From Thecamonas trahens ATCC 50062 (lineage: Eukaryota; Protista; Apusomonadida): a DNA stretch of 64,000 nucleotides. Position 1 is the first letter of the stretch. Every line of letters begins with the position of its first letter. The notes below the pieces were generated by a model. The model was given only the letters and a program-made list of their open reading frames with translations. It had not been told where the DNA came from and ran no database searches. A program made the position numbers and the translations under genes. Positions 56,477 to 62,600 of the stretch are shown piece after piece. The stretch covers positions 523,167 to 587,166 of the forward strand of contig NW_013657677.1 of assembly GCF_000142905.1 (NCBI RefSeq), written 5' to 3'.

Positions 56477-57616
56477 ATGCGGGTGACGCGGACGACGTTG
56501 GTGGCATGGTGCGTGTGCGTGGTTGCGGTGGTTGTGGCGTGCCTGGTGGCGACGAGCGAGGCGAGGACGCCGTCGTACTACTCAGTGCTCGGAGTGACGG
56601 CCAAGGCGAGCAAGCGGGAGATCAAGCGGGCGTATCGGAAGCTCTCGCGGGAGTTGCATCCGGACAAGAACCCTGATGATCCGGATGCAAACAGCAAGTT
56701 CATGGAAGCGGCGCGGGCGTATGAGGTCCTCACCGACGAGAAGCTGAGGCAGATCTACGACCGCGGCGGAGTCAAGGCCGTGGAGAAGCACGAGAAGCAG
56801 GCGGCTTCGGGCCATGGCGGCGGGTTCAATCCGTTTGACATGTTTGGCTTCAACCGCGGCGGCGGCGGCGGCAACCAGGAGCGGCGAGGGCCGTCGATCG
56901 AGATCGAGTTTGAGGTCGCGCTCGACGCGCTCTACGAGGGCACCGCGCTCGAGGCGCAGTTTGCCAAGCAGGTCATCTGCCCCGAGTGCGACGGGACCGG
57001 CGCCGAGGATCCCGACGACGTGCAGACGTGCCCAGTGTGCGGCGGCCGCGGCGTCAAGATTACCCGCCACCAGATGGCGCCGGGCTTTGTCCAGCAGATG
57101 CAGACAACGTGCGACAAGTGCGGCGGCAAAGGCAAGATTGTCAAGTCGGTCTGCCGCGCCTGTCGCGGGCGCAAGGTCGTCCCGGGCTCGTCGGTCATCG
57201 ACATTGTGCTCGAGTCGGGCACGCCCGACGGCCACCGGGTCGAGTTCCCCATGGAGGCCGATCAGGCTCCCGACATGGTGCCCGGCGACCTTATCTTTGT
57301 CATCAAGACCGCGCCGCATCCGACCTTTACCCGTGACGCCAACCAGGTCGACCTTCATACCTCGGCCACAATCTCGCTCCTCGACGCGCTTGTCGGCTTC
57401 TCGACTCCGCTGGTTCACCTTGACGGCCACACCGTTGACCTTGAGAACGTCGGCATCACCCGCCCAGGCCAGGTCATCAAGATCGCCGGCGAGGGCATGC
57501 CGCACTTTGAGACGCCTGACATCCGCGGCGACCTGTATGTCACCGTCCACATCCGCATGCCGGCCCGCCTTTCGTCGGGCCAGAAGGACCAGCTGCGGAA
57601 GATCCTTGCCGAGTGA
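56477..57616 (+). CDS. ER-luminal class A DnaJ (Scj1/ERdj3-like)
   Basis: Signal peptide, J domain with HPD, G/F region, four CxxCxG motifs and a DnaJ C-terminal domain. Confidence 0.92.
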   Translation: MRVTRTTLVAWCVCVVAVVVACLVATSEARTPSYYSVLGVTAKASKREIKRAYRKLSRELHPDKNPDDPDANSKFMEAARAYEVLTDEKLRQIYDRGGVKAVEKHEKQAASGHGGGFNPFDMFGFNRGGGGGNQERRGPSIEIEFEVALDALYEGTALEAQFAKQVICPECDGTGAEDPDDVQTCPVCGGRGVKITRHQMAPGFVQQMQTTCDKCGGKGKIVKSVCRACRGRKVVPGSSVIDIVLESGTPDGHRVEFPMEADQAPDMVPGDLIFVIKTAPHPTFTRDANQVDLHTSATISLLDALVGFSTPLVHLDGHTVDLENVGITRPGQVIKIAGEGMPHFETPDIRGDLYVTVHIRMPARLSSGQKDQLRKILAE

Positions 57617-57713
57617 CGCGCCGATAAAGTGCAGCAATGACCCCGCAGGTCCAGGGCAGGGCTTTACTCGTCTGATCGCGCGTCTTTGTGTGCAGCAGCA
57701 GAGAGGAAGCGGT

Positions 57714-59514
57714 TTACTGGTCAGAGTGCAAGCTCGCCATGACCTGTCGGAGAGACTCGGCAACTTGGGCAGCGGTGGCGGCAGGGAGCGTCGACGCCTT
57801 TGCGCGGAGCCTGTCGATCTCGGCTACAAGCTCGGTGTTTCGCCGGGCAGAGCTAGTCTGGGCAGAGCCATCGGCAAAGGTGTCAAAGATCACCGCGAGC
57901 GACGGCGAGCGGGCGACCTGCTGAGCTGTCCGCGCCACCTCGGCCTCCTCGGCGACGAGCCACGAGTGGGCAATTTCGACGAGCGCCGTCCTCGCGACGG
58001 CCTTGATCTTCAGCTTGAGATACAAGTCGTCAAGCGCACTGGCGACGAGCTCGTTCACGATGCTCTTCAGCGCTTCTGGATCGATGAATGTGTCTGAGGC
58101 GTAGGCTGTGGGCAGACCCGAAGGCGGCAGCTGCTTGGTCACAGCATTGGGCTCAAAGCGGAGGTACGGGACCGAGCCCTCAACAAACATGTGGGCGAGA
58201 ATGACATCCTCCTGGGAAATAGTCTTCTTCCGGCGGTACTCGACGAGGATTCGGACTACGCCGAGAAGCGTGTTGAGGCGGGTGGTGAGCCGCTCGCGGA
58301 CGTCATCGTAGAGCCCGAGCGTAAAGTGCTCGATGCGGGCCGAGTCACGCGAGAGCTTGAGCGCGGCGACCGCGGCGCCCGCCGGAGTGGTGAAGCCCTT
58401 GGGTGGCTTGGCGGTGGTAGACGAGGCGCACGGCTTGTCGCTCGCGTCACCGCCTTGCGCCACCGACTTCCAAGTCTTGCGCAGCACAAGCGAGTTGCCG
58501 ACGAGGGCGGCGAGCTCGGCGTCGGCGCCGATGGCGGTCTCGAGGTCGATCGGCGTGATCCGCATTCGGCCGGCAGCTCTGGCGGCGTTGCCCGACAGCT
58601 CGACGATCTCGGCAACCAAGTATTCGAGGACGGCCGCGAGGTAGACCGGTGCGCTGCCGCTGACCCGGCCGATGACTATCGCCCGCATGTACCGGTGGAT
58701 GCGGCCGACCGGGAACTGCAGGCCGGCGCGAGTCGAGCGCGTTGTCGACCGGTATCCAGAGCCAGAGCCTGAGAACTTGGTCACAGCCTTGCAGCCTTCA
58801 GCAACGGCATGCTTGGTCAGCTCACCCTGGATGACAATCCTGACTGCCGTCTGGATCTCGCGCGACGAAACAGTAGTCTTGCCCATCATGGGCATGATTC
58901 TGCTGGCGAGCTCCACGATCTGCCGCAGGGTGTCAAACACAAACGCGTTGACCATCGTCATGCCTTGCTTGGAGATGCCTGCATCCGGATGGACCTAGCG
59001 TCCCGGACGTGGTTAGCACGTCCAGTTGTGGCCCAGAGCCATTCCGATCATAGCCAGCCCCGCATCGAGCCAGCCCCGCATTCGAGCCATCCCGATCATT
59101 GCCATCCCGGGATCGAGCCAGCCCCGCATTCGAGCCATCCCGATCATAGCCAGCCCCGCACCGAGCCATCGTCATCGCCATTCCCATCGCCACCGGCACC
59201 GGCACCGCCACCGTCACCGCCACCAGCACCGCACCCCCCCTTTTGTATGAGTTTTCGTATGTGTGTGTATGCGCGTGACATGCGCCTGTTGCAATTGTCG
59301 CGCGTGTAGTGTGTGTCGCCTGTTTGCTTGCGTGTCGAAAGAAAAAGACAGGCTTCCATTGCCACCCCCTCCCTCCCCCTCCCCCCCCCCCCCCCCCCAC
59401 CCCACCCCAACCGTCACCCACCCACCCCAACCATCACCCACATGGAACCCATACCTGCTTCAACACCTTGTAAATGTAGCTTGCAAAGGTCTCGCGACGG
59501 CGGGTGCGTGCCAT
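57714..59514 (-). CDS. Fused multi-histone protein H2B-H2A-(H4-like)-(partial H3-like), about 446 aa; exons 59514-59455 and 58994-57714
   Basis: Exon 1 MARTRRRETFASYIYKVLKQ splices in frame to VHPDAGISKQGM..SREIQTAVR..GELTKHAVAEG.KAVTKF (H2B). This is followed by RSTRAGLQFPVGRIHR..APVYLAAVLEYL.AE..EL.GNAAR (H2A) and two more histone-fold-like segments. Confidence 0.88.
59035..59170. repeat. Intronic composite tandem repeat (GAGCCATCCCGATCATAGCCAGCCCCGCAT-type units) in the histone-fusion intron
   Basis: About three imperfect copies are visible. Confidence 0.8.
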
Positions 59515-59668
59515 GGAGGGCTGTGCCGTCGAGTGGAATGGCCGGCCAACAACCAATGCTTGAATGCTTGGTTTGGCACATGCGGCAACACCTCACCACA
59601 CACGCACAATCGTGGTCACGGCGCCGAGGTTCAACTTTTGTACATTGAGAGGGTAGGGTATGAGGGGA

Positions 59669-62600
59669 TCAGATGGCATCAAGATCAACAGGAACATCGC
59701 CAGTGATCTCAAAGTTGATGCGCTTGGGCGGCTCCTCGGGCGGCTGGTAGAGAGTGCGGTAGGCTGAGCGGGTGGCGGCATACGGGACAAAGACGTCTGC
59801 GGTCTCTTGCGAGATAAACTCCGAGGCCTGGACAAACTTGTCGAGGGCGACGAGGAGCGAGGGGATCTGCGGGTTCGCGGCCTTGCCCTCGACCTTGAAG
59901 AGGCGGAGGATGATGACGGAGGAGACCTCGACAAAGAGGCGCGACGAGACGACGGCGCCGCGGGTGATAGAGCCCGGGCGGAGGTCGCGCATGGCCTCGA
60001 GGGTAATGGTGAATGCAGAGATGAGGAGGGCGGCGGCCTGGGCAAAGGCGTGGCCACCGAGCGGGGCGGCCTCGAGGTCGGGGTCGTAGCGGGCCGAAGG
60101 CTGGCCCCACACCGCGGTGCAGGAGAAGCAGGCGGCGAGGACAAAGGGGAGGCGGGCCCAGAGTTGGACGTCCTCCTGGACCTTGGTCACCTGTGCGCAC
60201 ACGCCGAGGAGCAGGTGGTCCGGGTCGCGGTCTGAGCCGCAGTACTTGGCGAGCTGGTCCATGCCTAGCAGCTTGGGCTCGCGCTCGTAGTTGATGGCGT
60301 ACTGGCGGACGGTCGACTCGACGACCGAGGCGATGAACGGGGTGGCGTCGCGGACGGCCTCGCGCAGCGCCTTGCGCAGCATGTTGCGGAGGAAGGTGAT
60401 GTTGCCGATGGCGACGACCGACGAGGTCAGCTGCGGCAGCGACTGGAACTTGGCGATGGTCTCGGCGGCGGGGTCTTCGGCGTGGTAGTTGGTGACGAGC
60501 TCCTCTGTGTACGAGCGGTTGGCGGCGAGGATCTTCTTCATCAGCACAATGTGCCGGCCGATGCCGTTGACAAGATGGTGGTCCATGACGTCGACACCGT
60601 ACGGGCCGAGGAGGGTGACGAGGGCGCGGATCTCGGGCTCGGAGAGAAAGTGCTGCGCAAACGGGCCGGTCCGCCCGGCAACCGGTGGGGTAATGAACGA
60701 CCCGTTGAGCGGCGAGAAGCAGACGCCGTCGACAACCTTGCGGAGGACAAACTCGGTGTACCACTTGGCGACAAAGTCGACCATGACCATGGCCTGCGGC
60801 TCGGCCTCGACTCCGGACTTTTGCTGCTCGAGTGTCGTCGAGAACGAGTGGTGGACCATGACCGTGCGGATGAGCTCCTGCACGTTCACGTCGATGTACC
60901 GCTCGACAAGGGAGAAGCCGTGCAGGTACGCTTGGAGCCGCGAGAGGAGCTGCGAGGGGCGGGCAATCATGCCCGATTCGGAGCGGCAGAGCTTGAGGAC
61001 AAGCGCTGAGAAGACGTCCTTGATGGCACGGACAAGGATTTCACGAGGAACAATGACCGAGTCAAAAACGCGGACGGCCTCGTGCTCGCCAAAGGCCATG
61101 CAGAGGTAGCGGAGGATGACAAGCGCCTCGGACATGCGCGCAACCGCATTGCGGTTGGCCGGAATCGACTCGGTGCCCGGAAGCGCACCGCCGGCGCTCG
61201 GGTTGACCGCCGTCCCGGCCGCCGCAGCGTCGCGCTGGGCCTGGAAGAGCTTAAAGGCCTCGACTGGCGCGAGCTGCGACTTGAGCGAGAGGATCGACTC
61301 GCCGACCCGCTGGCACATGTTGGTGATTTGCTTGGCCATGGCCGAGAAGACCTGGGTGGCGAGCTCGATGCCCTGCGAGCCGATGTGGACCCGCTCCTCA
61401 GGCAGGAAGCGCGAGGTCCGGTAGGCAAAGGTGTCGCAGACCTTGGCCATGGCCATCGAGTGCATGGCCAGCGGCGTCGGCGAGCCGACCGCGCCTTGGA
61501 ACATGGCGAGGAAGGTTGGGCGGTGCCAGAAGAGCATGTCGAGCGAGGCGTGCTTGAGGACCGTCGACTTGAAGTTGCCCACCACCTCGGCGTGCTGCGA
61601 AATGAGGTTGAGCCTCGCGGCAAGGTTCTTGAACGCGACGTTGGTCGGCTGGAACGGCGCCTGCTGCGAGCAATAGATGACCTGCAGCCGCATCCAGTTG
61701 AGCGAGATGGTCTCCATCAGCGCGCGGTTACCGGCCGACGCGTTCTCGCACGCGGAAATGATGTCTTCAAACACGTCGAGCGGCTCCTGGTCGAGCCCGC
61801 ACTCGGCCGAGAACGCGTTGAGTGCATGCTGCAGACCGTTGACGTCGGTCGTTTGCAGGTACTTGACATGGTACGCCAGGATATCGTCCTCGTACTTTTC
61901 GAGCAGGTCAACAAACGCATCGACGTAGTACACAATTGTCGGCACCGTCGGGTCCTCAAACTCGGCCGCGTTGTGCTTGGCCTTGGACTTGTTCGGAGGA
62001 AGCTCCTCGCGGCCGTGGTGGTGGACGTAGAACTTGATCTCGTCGGTGGCCAGAGCGCACGCCGCCAGCACCATCGGGAGCTTTGGGCCGAGAAGGCCCG
62101 GCTCGCCCGCACACATCGAGTACAGCGAGGCCAGCGCCTGCCGCAGCCACTGCCGCCGCTCGCGGTGCGTCGCTCCGGCGGTCTGGGTAAACGTCGTCGA
62201 CGTCTCGACCACAAACTTCTTCTGCTTGGTCAGGTTGATGGCCGAGCCGTTGAACGAGGCAAAGACCTGCTGGAACTCGTTGTGGATGACAACAAGCACG
62301 TCGCGGTGGACAGGGAGCATCGAGACGTACGAAAGAGCCGTCTTGAGGAGGCCAAACAGGTTGGCCGACGCCAGCTCGTTCGGACAAAGGAGGGTGCCAA
62401 ACAGGATCCACATGGTGTACTTTTCCATGTTGCGCGCCGCAGTGTAGATGGGCCCGTTGGCCGGCACCACCGCAGCCGCCCCGGCGTGTGACACAATCGA
62501 GATGTCGCCGTCGTCGCGGAGCTGCGCTGTCGAGAGCAGCTTCATGTACGGCATCTGCAGCGTGGTCAGCGCCGAGCCGACCAGCGACGAGATCGACGCA

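Follow-up and report, generated by a model that had tools for sequence, protein, structure and literature searches.

The stretch of DNA analysed here, a window of 64,000 nucleotides on contig C3 of the genome (G000) of the marine flagellate Thecamonas trahens ATCC 50062, an apusomonad, contains an intact nuclear gene for a single-chain histone repeat, in which an H2B fold, an H2A fold and two further helical segments follow each other in one polypeptide of 446 amino acids. The gene lies on the minus strand, as do all of its features described below, and consists of two exons. Exon 1 (59455-59514) provides the start codon at 59514 and the first 20 residues, which form a short basic N-terminus and the beginning of helix alpha1 of H2B; exon 2 (57714-58994) holds an open frame down to a TAA stop codon (57714-57716). 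The two are separated by an intron of 460 nucleotides (58995-59454) with GT-AG borders, which starts with GTATGG, ends with CTAG and contains runs of G and short tandem repeats. Because an in-frame TAG sits directly upstream of exon 2, splicing is required to complete the H2B fold. The translation of exon 2 is 100% identical to the database protein P0001 (KNC50674.1/XP_013762554.1; 446 amino acids, 20 + 426), whose residues 1-20 equal the product of exon 1 and which is labelled in NCBI just as 'histone H2A'. An earlier inspection of the window from its letters alone, referred to here as the sequence-only reading, had proposed the 60-nt exon and the intron boundaries, and both hold at the DNA level; it had also taken this first exon to have been missed, whereas XP_013762554.1 is the product of exon 1 plus exon 2 and the first exon is thus already part of the public NCBI model. 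Full-length analyses were run on the database record P0001, and the exons themselves were searched separately.

Within exon 2, the remainder of the H2B fold (residues 21-97; 58764-58994) is followed by a Gly/Ser-rich linker of 11 residues (residues 98-108; 58731-58763) and by the H2A fold (residues 109-193; 58476-58730). Pfam Histone matches twice (E 1.3e-16), CBFD_NFYB_HMF in addition matches the H2A part, and locally built models of H2B and H2A score 135 and 120 bits, respectively. In a structure predicted by AlphaFold2 from a 41-row alignment, the predicted local distance difference test score (pLDDT) is 95-98 for residues 10-190. The H2B part aligns with solved H2B chains at a Z score of 9.8 and a root-mean-square deviation (rmsd) of 1.1 A (VIA-align), and the H2B+H2A unit superimposes on 6w4l, a solved engineered single-chain H2B-H2A, with a template modelling (TM) score of 0.97, an rmsd of 1.0 A and 55% identity. 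A structure search of the whole PDB, which was dominated by this N-terminal pair and gave no verdict on the C-terminal half, returned 8uqe_B (Z 29) and the Melbournevirus doublet 7n8n_D (Z 23.1). The two folds are thus predicted to pack as an intramolecular pair of the H2A-H2B type. The basic residues that contact DNA are retained, and the isoelectric points (pI) of the H2B and H2A halves are 10.3 and 10.0. Both folds are complete and joined by a Gly/Ser-type linker, as the sequence-only reading had it; nonetheless, the C-terminal docking domain of H2A is missing, and Pfam H2A_C gives no match in this gene while the same model matches fused histone genes on contigs C29 and C26 of the same genome.

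The fusion of H2B and H2A is certain: it is genuine, contained in a single exon and read in an uninterrupted frame. Apparent histone fusions in animals that were checked by Talbert et al. turned out to be neighbouring genes wrongly spliced together (PMC9145170), an artefact that does not apply here, since the junction lies inside one exon. There are no stops between the two parts, and a contig assembled separately from the DNA run X4 covers 57600-59093 with zero differences, so that there is no sign of mis-assembly across the fusion either. Read contigs do break within the intron, at 59064-59420, a stretch with short tandem repeats and ~25 consecutive G; in one sequencing run, single bases are inserted at 59233 and 59635.

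Relatives of the second half of the protein are few. A HMMER search with the C-terminal 253 residues among 1.84 billion representative proteins returned, besides the protein itself, one other cluster, P0002 (E 1.5e-20), a protein of 459 amino acids encoded by an intronless gene on Tara Oceans contigs of eukaryotic character. P0002 is 44% identical to the Thecamonas protein over 400 residues and 33% identical in the C-terminal half; it carries the exon-1 motif contiguous with the rest of H2B and a longer Gly-rich linker at the same H2B/H2A junction. Near-identical intact copies are present in five Tara samples, and their variants differ at 8 codons, too few for a ratio of non-synonymous to synonymous substitution rates (dN/dS). 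One copy has as its neighbours a large ankyrin/dynein-AAA gene on one side and a gene for a USP-type hydrolase on the other; its contig measures 12.5 kb and has a GC content of 62%. The Thecamonas counterpart of this USP protein is 60-70% identical and encoded on another contig, which indicates that the owner of P0002 is a relative of Thecamonas and that the locus is not syntenic. As the C-terminal half aligns in both orthologues, it is conserved and restricted to this lineage. No further orthologue of this half emerged when viral and JGI metagenome contigs were scanned, and a search of the Thecamonas genome with its profile found the fused gene only and no paralogue.

A Ser/Thr/Lys-rich second linker (residues 194-219; 58398-58475), predicted to be disordered and with pLDDT below 50 for residues 201-221, connects the H2A fold to segment 3 (residues 220-292; 58179-58397), which, judged by profile comparisons and AlphaFold2, is very probably a diverged H4-type fold. 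A single-sequence query of the sequences of solved structures gave one match, a histone H4 at E 0.42. With a profile of the two orthologues, 85 of the 88 matches were H4 (best E 0.0021), all in the alpha2-L2-alpha3 register. A cleaned, locally built H4 model recognized each orthologue separately and in the same register (17.0 and 8.8 bits) and found nothing in reversed sequences. Comparison by hhalign resulted in a probability of 87.8% (P 3.4e-6) against H4 and of 95.9% (P 6.4e-9, 72 columns) against an H4 profile that includes viral H4s, versus 0.3-0.4% for reversed controls and, where compared, 0.4-28% for the other three histone classes; the H4-like fold claimed by the sequence-only reading thus lies well above chance. 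The 'R-K-T' loop L2 and the Asp of alpha3 are invariant between the orthologues, and the AlphaFold2 model shows a helix-helix-helix layout at pLDDT 70-84. Segment 3 is nevertheless no canonical H4: similarity can be detected in the alpha2-L2-alpha3 core only, a Ser/Thr/Pro-rich linker precedes the fold in place of a basic tail with Gly-Lys acetylation motifs, and the pI is 9.7 (5.4 in the orthologue) versus more than 11 for H3 and H4 of Thecamonas.

The arrangement of these segments has a precedent outside cellular genomes. Among the matches to an environmental relative, we found four proteins of 418-435 amino acids ordered H2B-H2A-H4-H3 (P0205, P0199, P0212 and P0156), with H4 at residues 209-320 and H3 at residues 316-434. 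MAFFT aligns them colinearly with the Thecamonas protein, in which segments 3 and 4 occupy residues 220-292 and 320-396. The contigs encoding P0205 have a GC content of 23% and are crowded with short orphan genes, together with genes for a YqaJ nuclease and TFIIB, which indicates a giant-virus setting. The domain order of the Thecamonas protein, as had been proposed from its sequence, is thus colinear with that of viral H2B-H2A-H4-H3 quadruplets. Environmental quadruplets with the alternative order H4-H2B-H2A-H3 were seen as well (P0125, P0142, P0204, P0208, P0211, P0215 and P0217), as were metagenomic H2B-H2A doublets with an extra domain of 200-300 residues and of unknown family (P0045, P0060, P0086 and P0111); this domain is C-terminal except in P0111, where it is N-terminal, and P0045 and P0060 are found on contigs of 21 and 99 kb.

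Segment 4 (residues 320-396; 57867-58097) is separated from the H4-like fold by a third linker (residues 293-319; 58098-58178), predicted to be disordered and with pLDDT below 50 for residues 298-321. Since histone folds come in pairs, the adjacent, conserved and helical segment 4 is a candidate partner of the H4-like fold. Its position and a weak profile match make a degenerate H3-like fold plausible: in hhalign, H3 outscores the other three histone classes and aligns in the alpha1-alpha2 register with P 0.044 (P 0.012 when viral sequences are included in the profile). The nearest structural neighbours of an ESM Atlas model of residues 205-402 are two Nucleocytoviricota clusters; one of them, a 223-aa histone-doublet cluster (PF00125 in 99% of its members, the H4-type PF15511 in 33%), matches with TM 0.54/0.48 over 135 aligned residues spanning 229-382. 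A Foldseek search of BFVD retrieves H4-H3 doublets at E 1e-4 to 1e-3, but these matches come without aligned ranges and carry no weight for the C-terminal half. The AlphaFold2 model has pLDDT 70-77 for residues 320-360. The chain ends in a tail (residues 397-446; 57717-57866; alignment A1) of two predicted helices, 403-420 and 425-443, with pLDDT 59-76, in agreement with the helical tail noted earlier; this tail is conserved in the orthologue, belongs to no known family and has generic helical-hairpin and coiled-coil-hairpin matches only (Z ~6.5-6.9).

Taken together, we lean, with moderate confidence, towards a single-chain repeat in which an H2B-H2A pair is followed by an H4-like fold and its degenerate partner at the H3 position. 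A series of observations weighs against this reading, most of them concerning segment 4. The locally built H3 model gives no match on this segment in either orthologue, and reversed controls reach P 0.05-0.77 in hhalign, close to the real values, so that the H3-like fold claimed by the sequence-only reading is, by sequence, not above chance. The alpha-N helix, the 'LPFQRL'-type motif of alpha1 and the Arg...Asp clamp of L2/alpha3, which mark canonical H3 and cenH3, are not conserved between the orthologues (for the Arg...Asp signature, see alignment A1), and the segment is acidic, with a pI of 4.6 (6.1 in the orthologue) versus more than 11 for Thecamonas H3 and H4. In the Atlas search, an unrelated 'transposase' cluster scores TM 0.51, close to the histone cluster, which renders the Atlas match a lead rather than proof. 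An AlphaFold2 run with the two orthologues only gave a pLDDT of 34.6, and the 41-row alignment holds viral quadruplets, by which the model is pulled towards the quadruplet fold. Residues 237-356 match only generic helical hairpins in the PDB-wide search (Z ~7). Finally, just two protein clusters in 1.84 billion carry the C-terminal half at all. With an acidic segment 4 that shows no significant match to H3 and no conserved signature, 'quadruplet' is a reading of the architecture and not a demonstrated fact; the gene is an incomplete quadruplet and best called a cellular, diverged, quadruplet-like histone repeat.

Several of these observations, namely the silence of the H3 model, the weak hhalign P values, the acidic pI and the generic hairpin matches of residues 237-356, are also those expected if the protein were an H2B-H2A-H4-like triplet. 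Its last 150 residues would then form a helical domain that does not derive from H3, perhaps a coiled-coil or a different interaction module, and its H4-like fold would find its partner in trans, in a separate histone-fold protein such as free H3 or a second copy. The drop of pLDDT to below 50 for residues 376-403 and the coiled-coil hairpins matched by the tail would fit such a protein as well, and we regard it as possible, if less probable. What speaks for a degenerate H3-position fold instead is that segment 4 is colinear in both position and length with H3 of viral quadruplets of the same order, that the histone-doublet match of the Atlas model extends across segments 3 and 4, and that the weak profile signal is specific for H3 and in the correct register, with nothing on segment 4 for H4, H2A or H2B. 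A plain variant H2B-H2A doublet, with a fast-evolving, mostly helical extension that resembles H4 by chance or convergence, is very improbable. Pfam finds no family in the last ~255 residues, and the single-sequence search brought up the orthologue only, as such an extension would predict, but the predominance of H4 among the solved-structure matches, the distance of the best hhalign result from its reversed controls and the independent recognition of both orthologues by the H4 model in the same register are hard to reconcile with it.

If the H4-like fold indeed has a degenerate partner in segment 4, at the viral H3 position, the protein would consist of two tethered histone-fold pairs and a two-helix tail peculiar to its lineage. 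The charge of the C-terminal pair is neutral to acidic, basic tails are missing from it, and the docking domain of H2A is absent, which suggests a division of labour: the H2B-H2A half would be expected to bind DNA or chromatin, and the C-terminal half to serve as a protein-interaction or assembly module and not as a DNA-wrapping H3-H4 unit. The roles suggested by the sequence-only reading, a single-chain half-nucleosome or a histone decoy, are conjectural, and the pI of 4.6-9.7 in the C-terminal half, versus more than 11 in real H3 and H4, argues against canonical DNA wrapping by this half. Rather than a bulk histone, the product would most likely be a specialised chromatin protein of the replication-independent type (a variant 'hemisome-like' unit). 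Replication-dependent histone genes are marked by a stem-loop in the 3' untranslated region (Rfam RF00032); no such element was found within 57300-59700 at E values up to 1, which is consistent with a replication-independent gene. Near the H4, H2A and H2B genes in the loci searched RF00032 had no match, and a weak one (21.8 bits, with a curated cut-off of 34) was seen just downstream of a canonical Thecamonas H3 gene (L003:1937-1982).

The setting of the gene is that of an ordinary host locus. It is flanked by a DnaJ gene with DnaJ, CxxCxGxG and DnaJ_C domains and by a gene for NCKAP1 (E 1e-222); these domain and family matches bear out the neighbours named in the sequence-only reading (Scj1/ERdj3 and NCKAP1). 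The GC content of the fused gene is 0.64, and its GC content at third codon positions (GC3) is 0.80, compared with 0.86 in the flanking genes. The spliceosomal intron, the host flanking genes and the host-like GC3 support a host-encoded gene and show no viral island, in line with the earlier statement that there are no viral neighbours.

Evidence on transcription is sparse. Runs X4 and X5, which carry the locus, cover the intron and are therefore DNA libraries; no exon joint was seen in them. A marine metatranscriptome contains one contig of 238 nt that is 100% identical to 57932-58169. This contig, a weak sign of expression that may be DNA carry-over, is the sole signal from an RNA library, and no read spans the splice junction, a further point on the negative side for the repeat we favour.

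We also asked where the gene groups in phylogenetic trees. In trees of H2A and of H2B+H2A, the Thecamonas gene and P0002 group with P0055 (L035:340-1518), with support of 82-89 in the Shimodaira-Hasegawa-like approximate likelihood ratio test (SH-aLRT; 89 in the H2B+H2A tree), and the H2A tree also places the gene near a viral triplet; both trees are star-like, and that of H2B+H2A comes from a quick tree search. P0055 is an environmental H4-H2B-H2A-H3 quadruplet from a contig of 50% GC and, like the Thecamonas gene, is devoid of the H2A docking domain. A clade with Thecamonas' own H2B+H2A was not rejected by the approximately unbiased (AU) test (p-AU 0.54). Between the two origins suggested in the sequence-only reading, a domesticated viral histone fusion and a fusion within the host, these sequence comparisons cannot decide, nor do they give the direction of transfer. 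We consider it very improbable that no functional product is made and that the locus is either an annotation artefact or the remnant, silent or decaying, of an inserted giant virus: the lack of transcript evidence and the environmental and viral repeats among its nearest H2B-H2A relatives would fit, but the 446-codon frame is intact, a full-length orthologue is conserved and intact in five samples, the locus has a host intron, host GC3 and host neighbours, and the fusion lies within one exon, unlike the mis-spliced animal genes.

The gene is not the only fused histone gene of Thecamonas. A genome scan with Pfam Histone revealed at least five other genes in which H2B and H2A share one frame: H2B-H2A doublets on C2 (214216-214365; L020) and C20 (411122-411256; L025), H2B-H2A-H3 triplets on C20 (387470-388368; L017/L023; annotated 'histone H3', P0231, 339 aa) and C26 (145760-146343; L021/L022), each of which carries a frame change or intron, and a gene on C29 in which an HMG-box-like domain is inserted between H2B and H2A (157962-158903; L012/L018). 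In common with XP_013762554.1, H2B precedes H2A in one frame, but none of them has an H4-like fold or the C-terminal half of that protein. Judged by their H2A parts, the C2 and C26 genes group with the H2A of Thecamonas itself (SH-aLRT 85), whereas XP_013762554.1 does not. Ordinary singlet genes for H2A, H2B, H3 and H4 are also present in the genome. The canonical H2B gene on C28 (L015:1140-1520) contains an intron of ~225 nt after the codons for 'YIYK'; a shared intron site with the fused gene was considered and rejected, as the C28 intron lies four codons upstream and is uninformative. At the C28 site, the H2B genes of C9 and C14 are uninterrupted, and a tRNA gene (55.6 bits; L013:2204-2274) is located ~400 bp downstream of the canonical H2B on C14. 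A protein of 406 amino acids in the transcriptome of the amoebozoan Nolandella sp. AFSM9 (P0081, EukProt) combines Pfam HMG_box and histone families as the C29 gene does, and cellular fused histones may thus not be limited to apusomonads.

According to reviews, fused core histones still await confirmation in eukaryotes or are generally absent from them (PMC9145170, PMC10919886), and a 2026 review gives core-histone-like double folds for animals only (PMC13088155). Our literature search found no paper that names XP_013762554.1 and none on fused histones in apusomonads. The present gene is a host gene with a one-exon fusion, an intron and an orthologue in a related ocean flagellate; it shares its genome with five or more other fused histone genes, and Thecamonas is a culturable cell in which one can ask what tethered histones do. 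It also makes one ask in which direction such genes moved between cells and giant viruses; the histone repeats of the latter are currently interpreted as remnants of stages in the transition from archaeal to eukaryotic nucleosomes (PMC11222145). A bolder proposition, and a rather doubtful one at present, is that apusomonads keep a family of single-chain histone repeats, the quadruplet-like gene included, which are made and assembled into chromatin. If this were true, histone repeats would not be a viral peculiarity, single-chain 'half-nucleosomes' would occur beside ordinary nucleosomes in one cell, and such cells could be donors or long-term recipients of the giant-virus repeats that are read as intermediates predating the last eukaryotic common ancestor.

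Among known systems, the animal HSIH proteins with a double histone fold (Miyake et al. 2026, cited in the review PMC13088155) are similar in that these predicted proteins, too, are cellular, combine an H2B-like with an H2A-like fold and show high identity to core histones. They have been reported from animals only and with two folds, whereas the Thecamonas protein has its junction in one exon and continues with an H4-like fold and a candidate H3-like one. The H2B-H2A doublet of Marseilleviridae (7n8n chains B and D) and the engineered 6w4l contain the same pair as modelled for the N-terminal 190 residues of the Thecamonas protein. Both end after H2A, while the latter runs on for 250 conserved residues.

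The closest resemblance is to the H2B-H2A-H4-H3 quadruplets described in Nucleocytoviricota (Talbert et al. 2022, PMC9145170; Irwin and Richards 2024, PMC11222145), although the differences are considerable. The viral quadruplets occur without other histones, whereas the Thecamonas gene is located in a cellular chromosome next to a full set of ordinary histone genes elsewhere in the genome, is interrupted by a spliceosomal intron and follows host codon usage. Its product has lost the H2A docking domain and has an additional helical tail of 50 residues, and divergence is far greater at the H4 and H3 positions, where basic tails are absent and the pI is 4.6-9.7. A quadruplet of the viral type would be expected to possess a strongly basic H4-H3 half able to wrap DNA and to assemble by itself into nucleosome-like particles that protect ~148 bp; judged by its charge, the C-terminal half of the Thecamonas protein is not strongly basic. 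What the proteins share is the order and spacing of their domains, their length (418-435 versus 446 amino acids), a short linker between H2B and H2A, about 31-35% overall identity in H2B-H2A and, at the H4 position, a fold that is recognisably H4-like in Thecamonas. The gene is thus a cellular form of a histone-repeat layout that has so far been described only in giant viruses.

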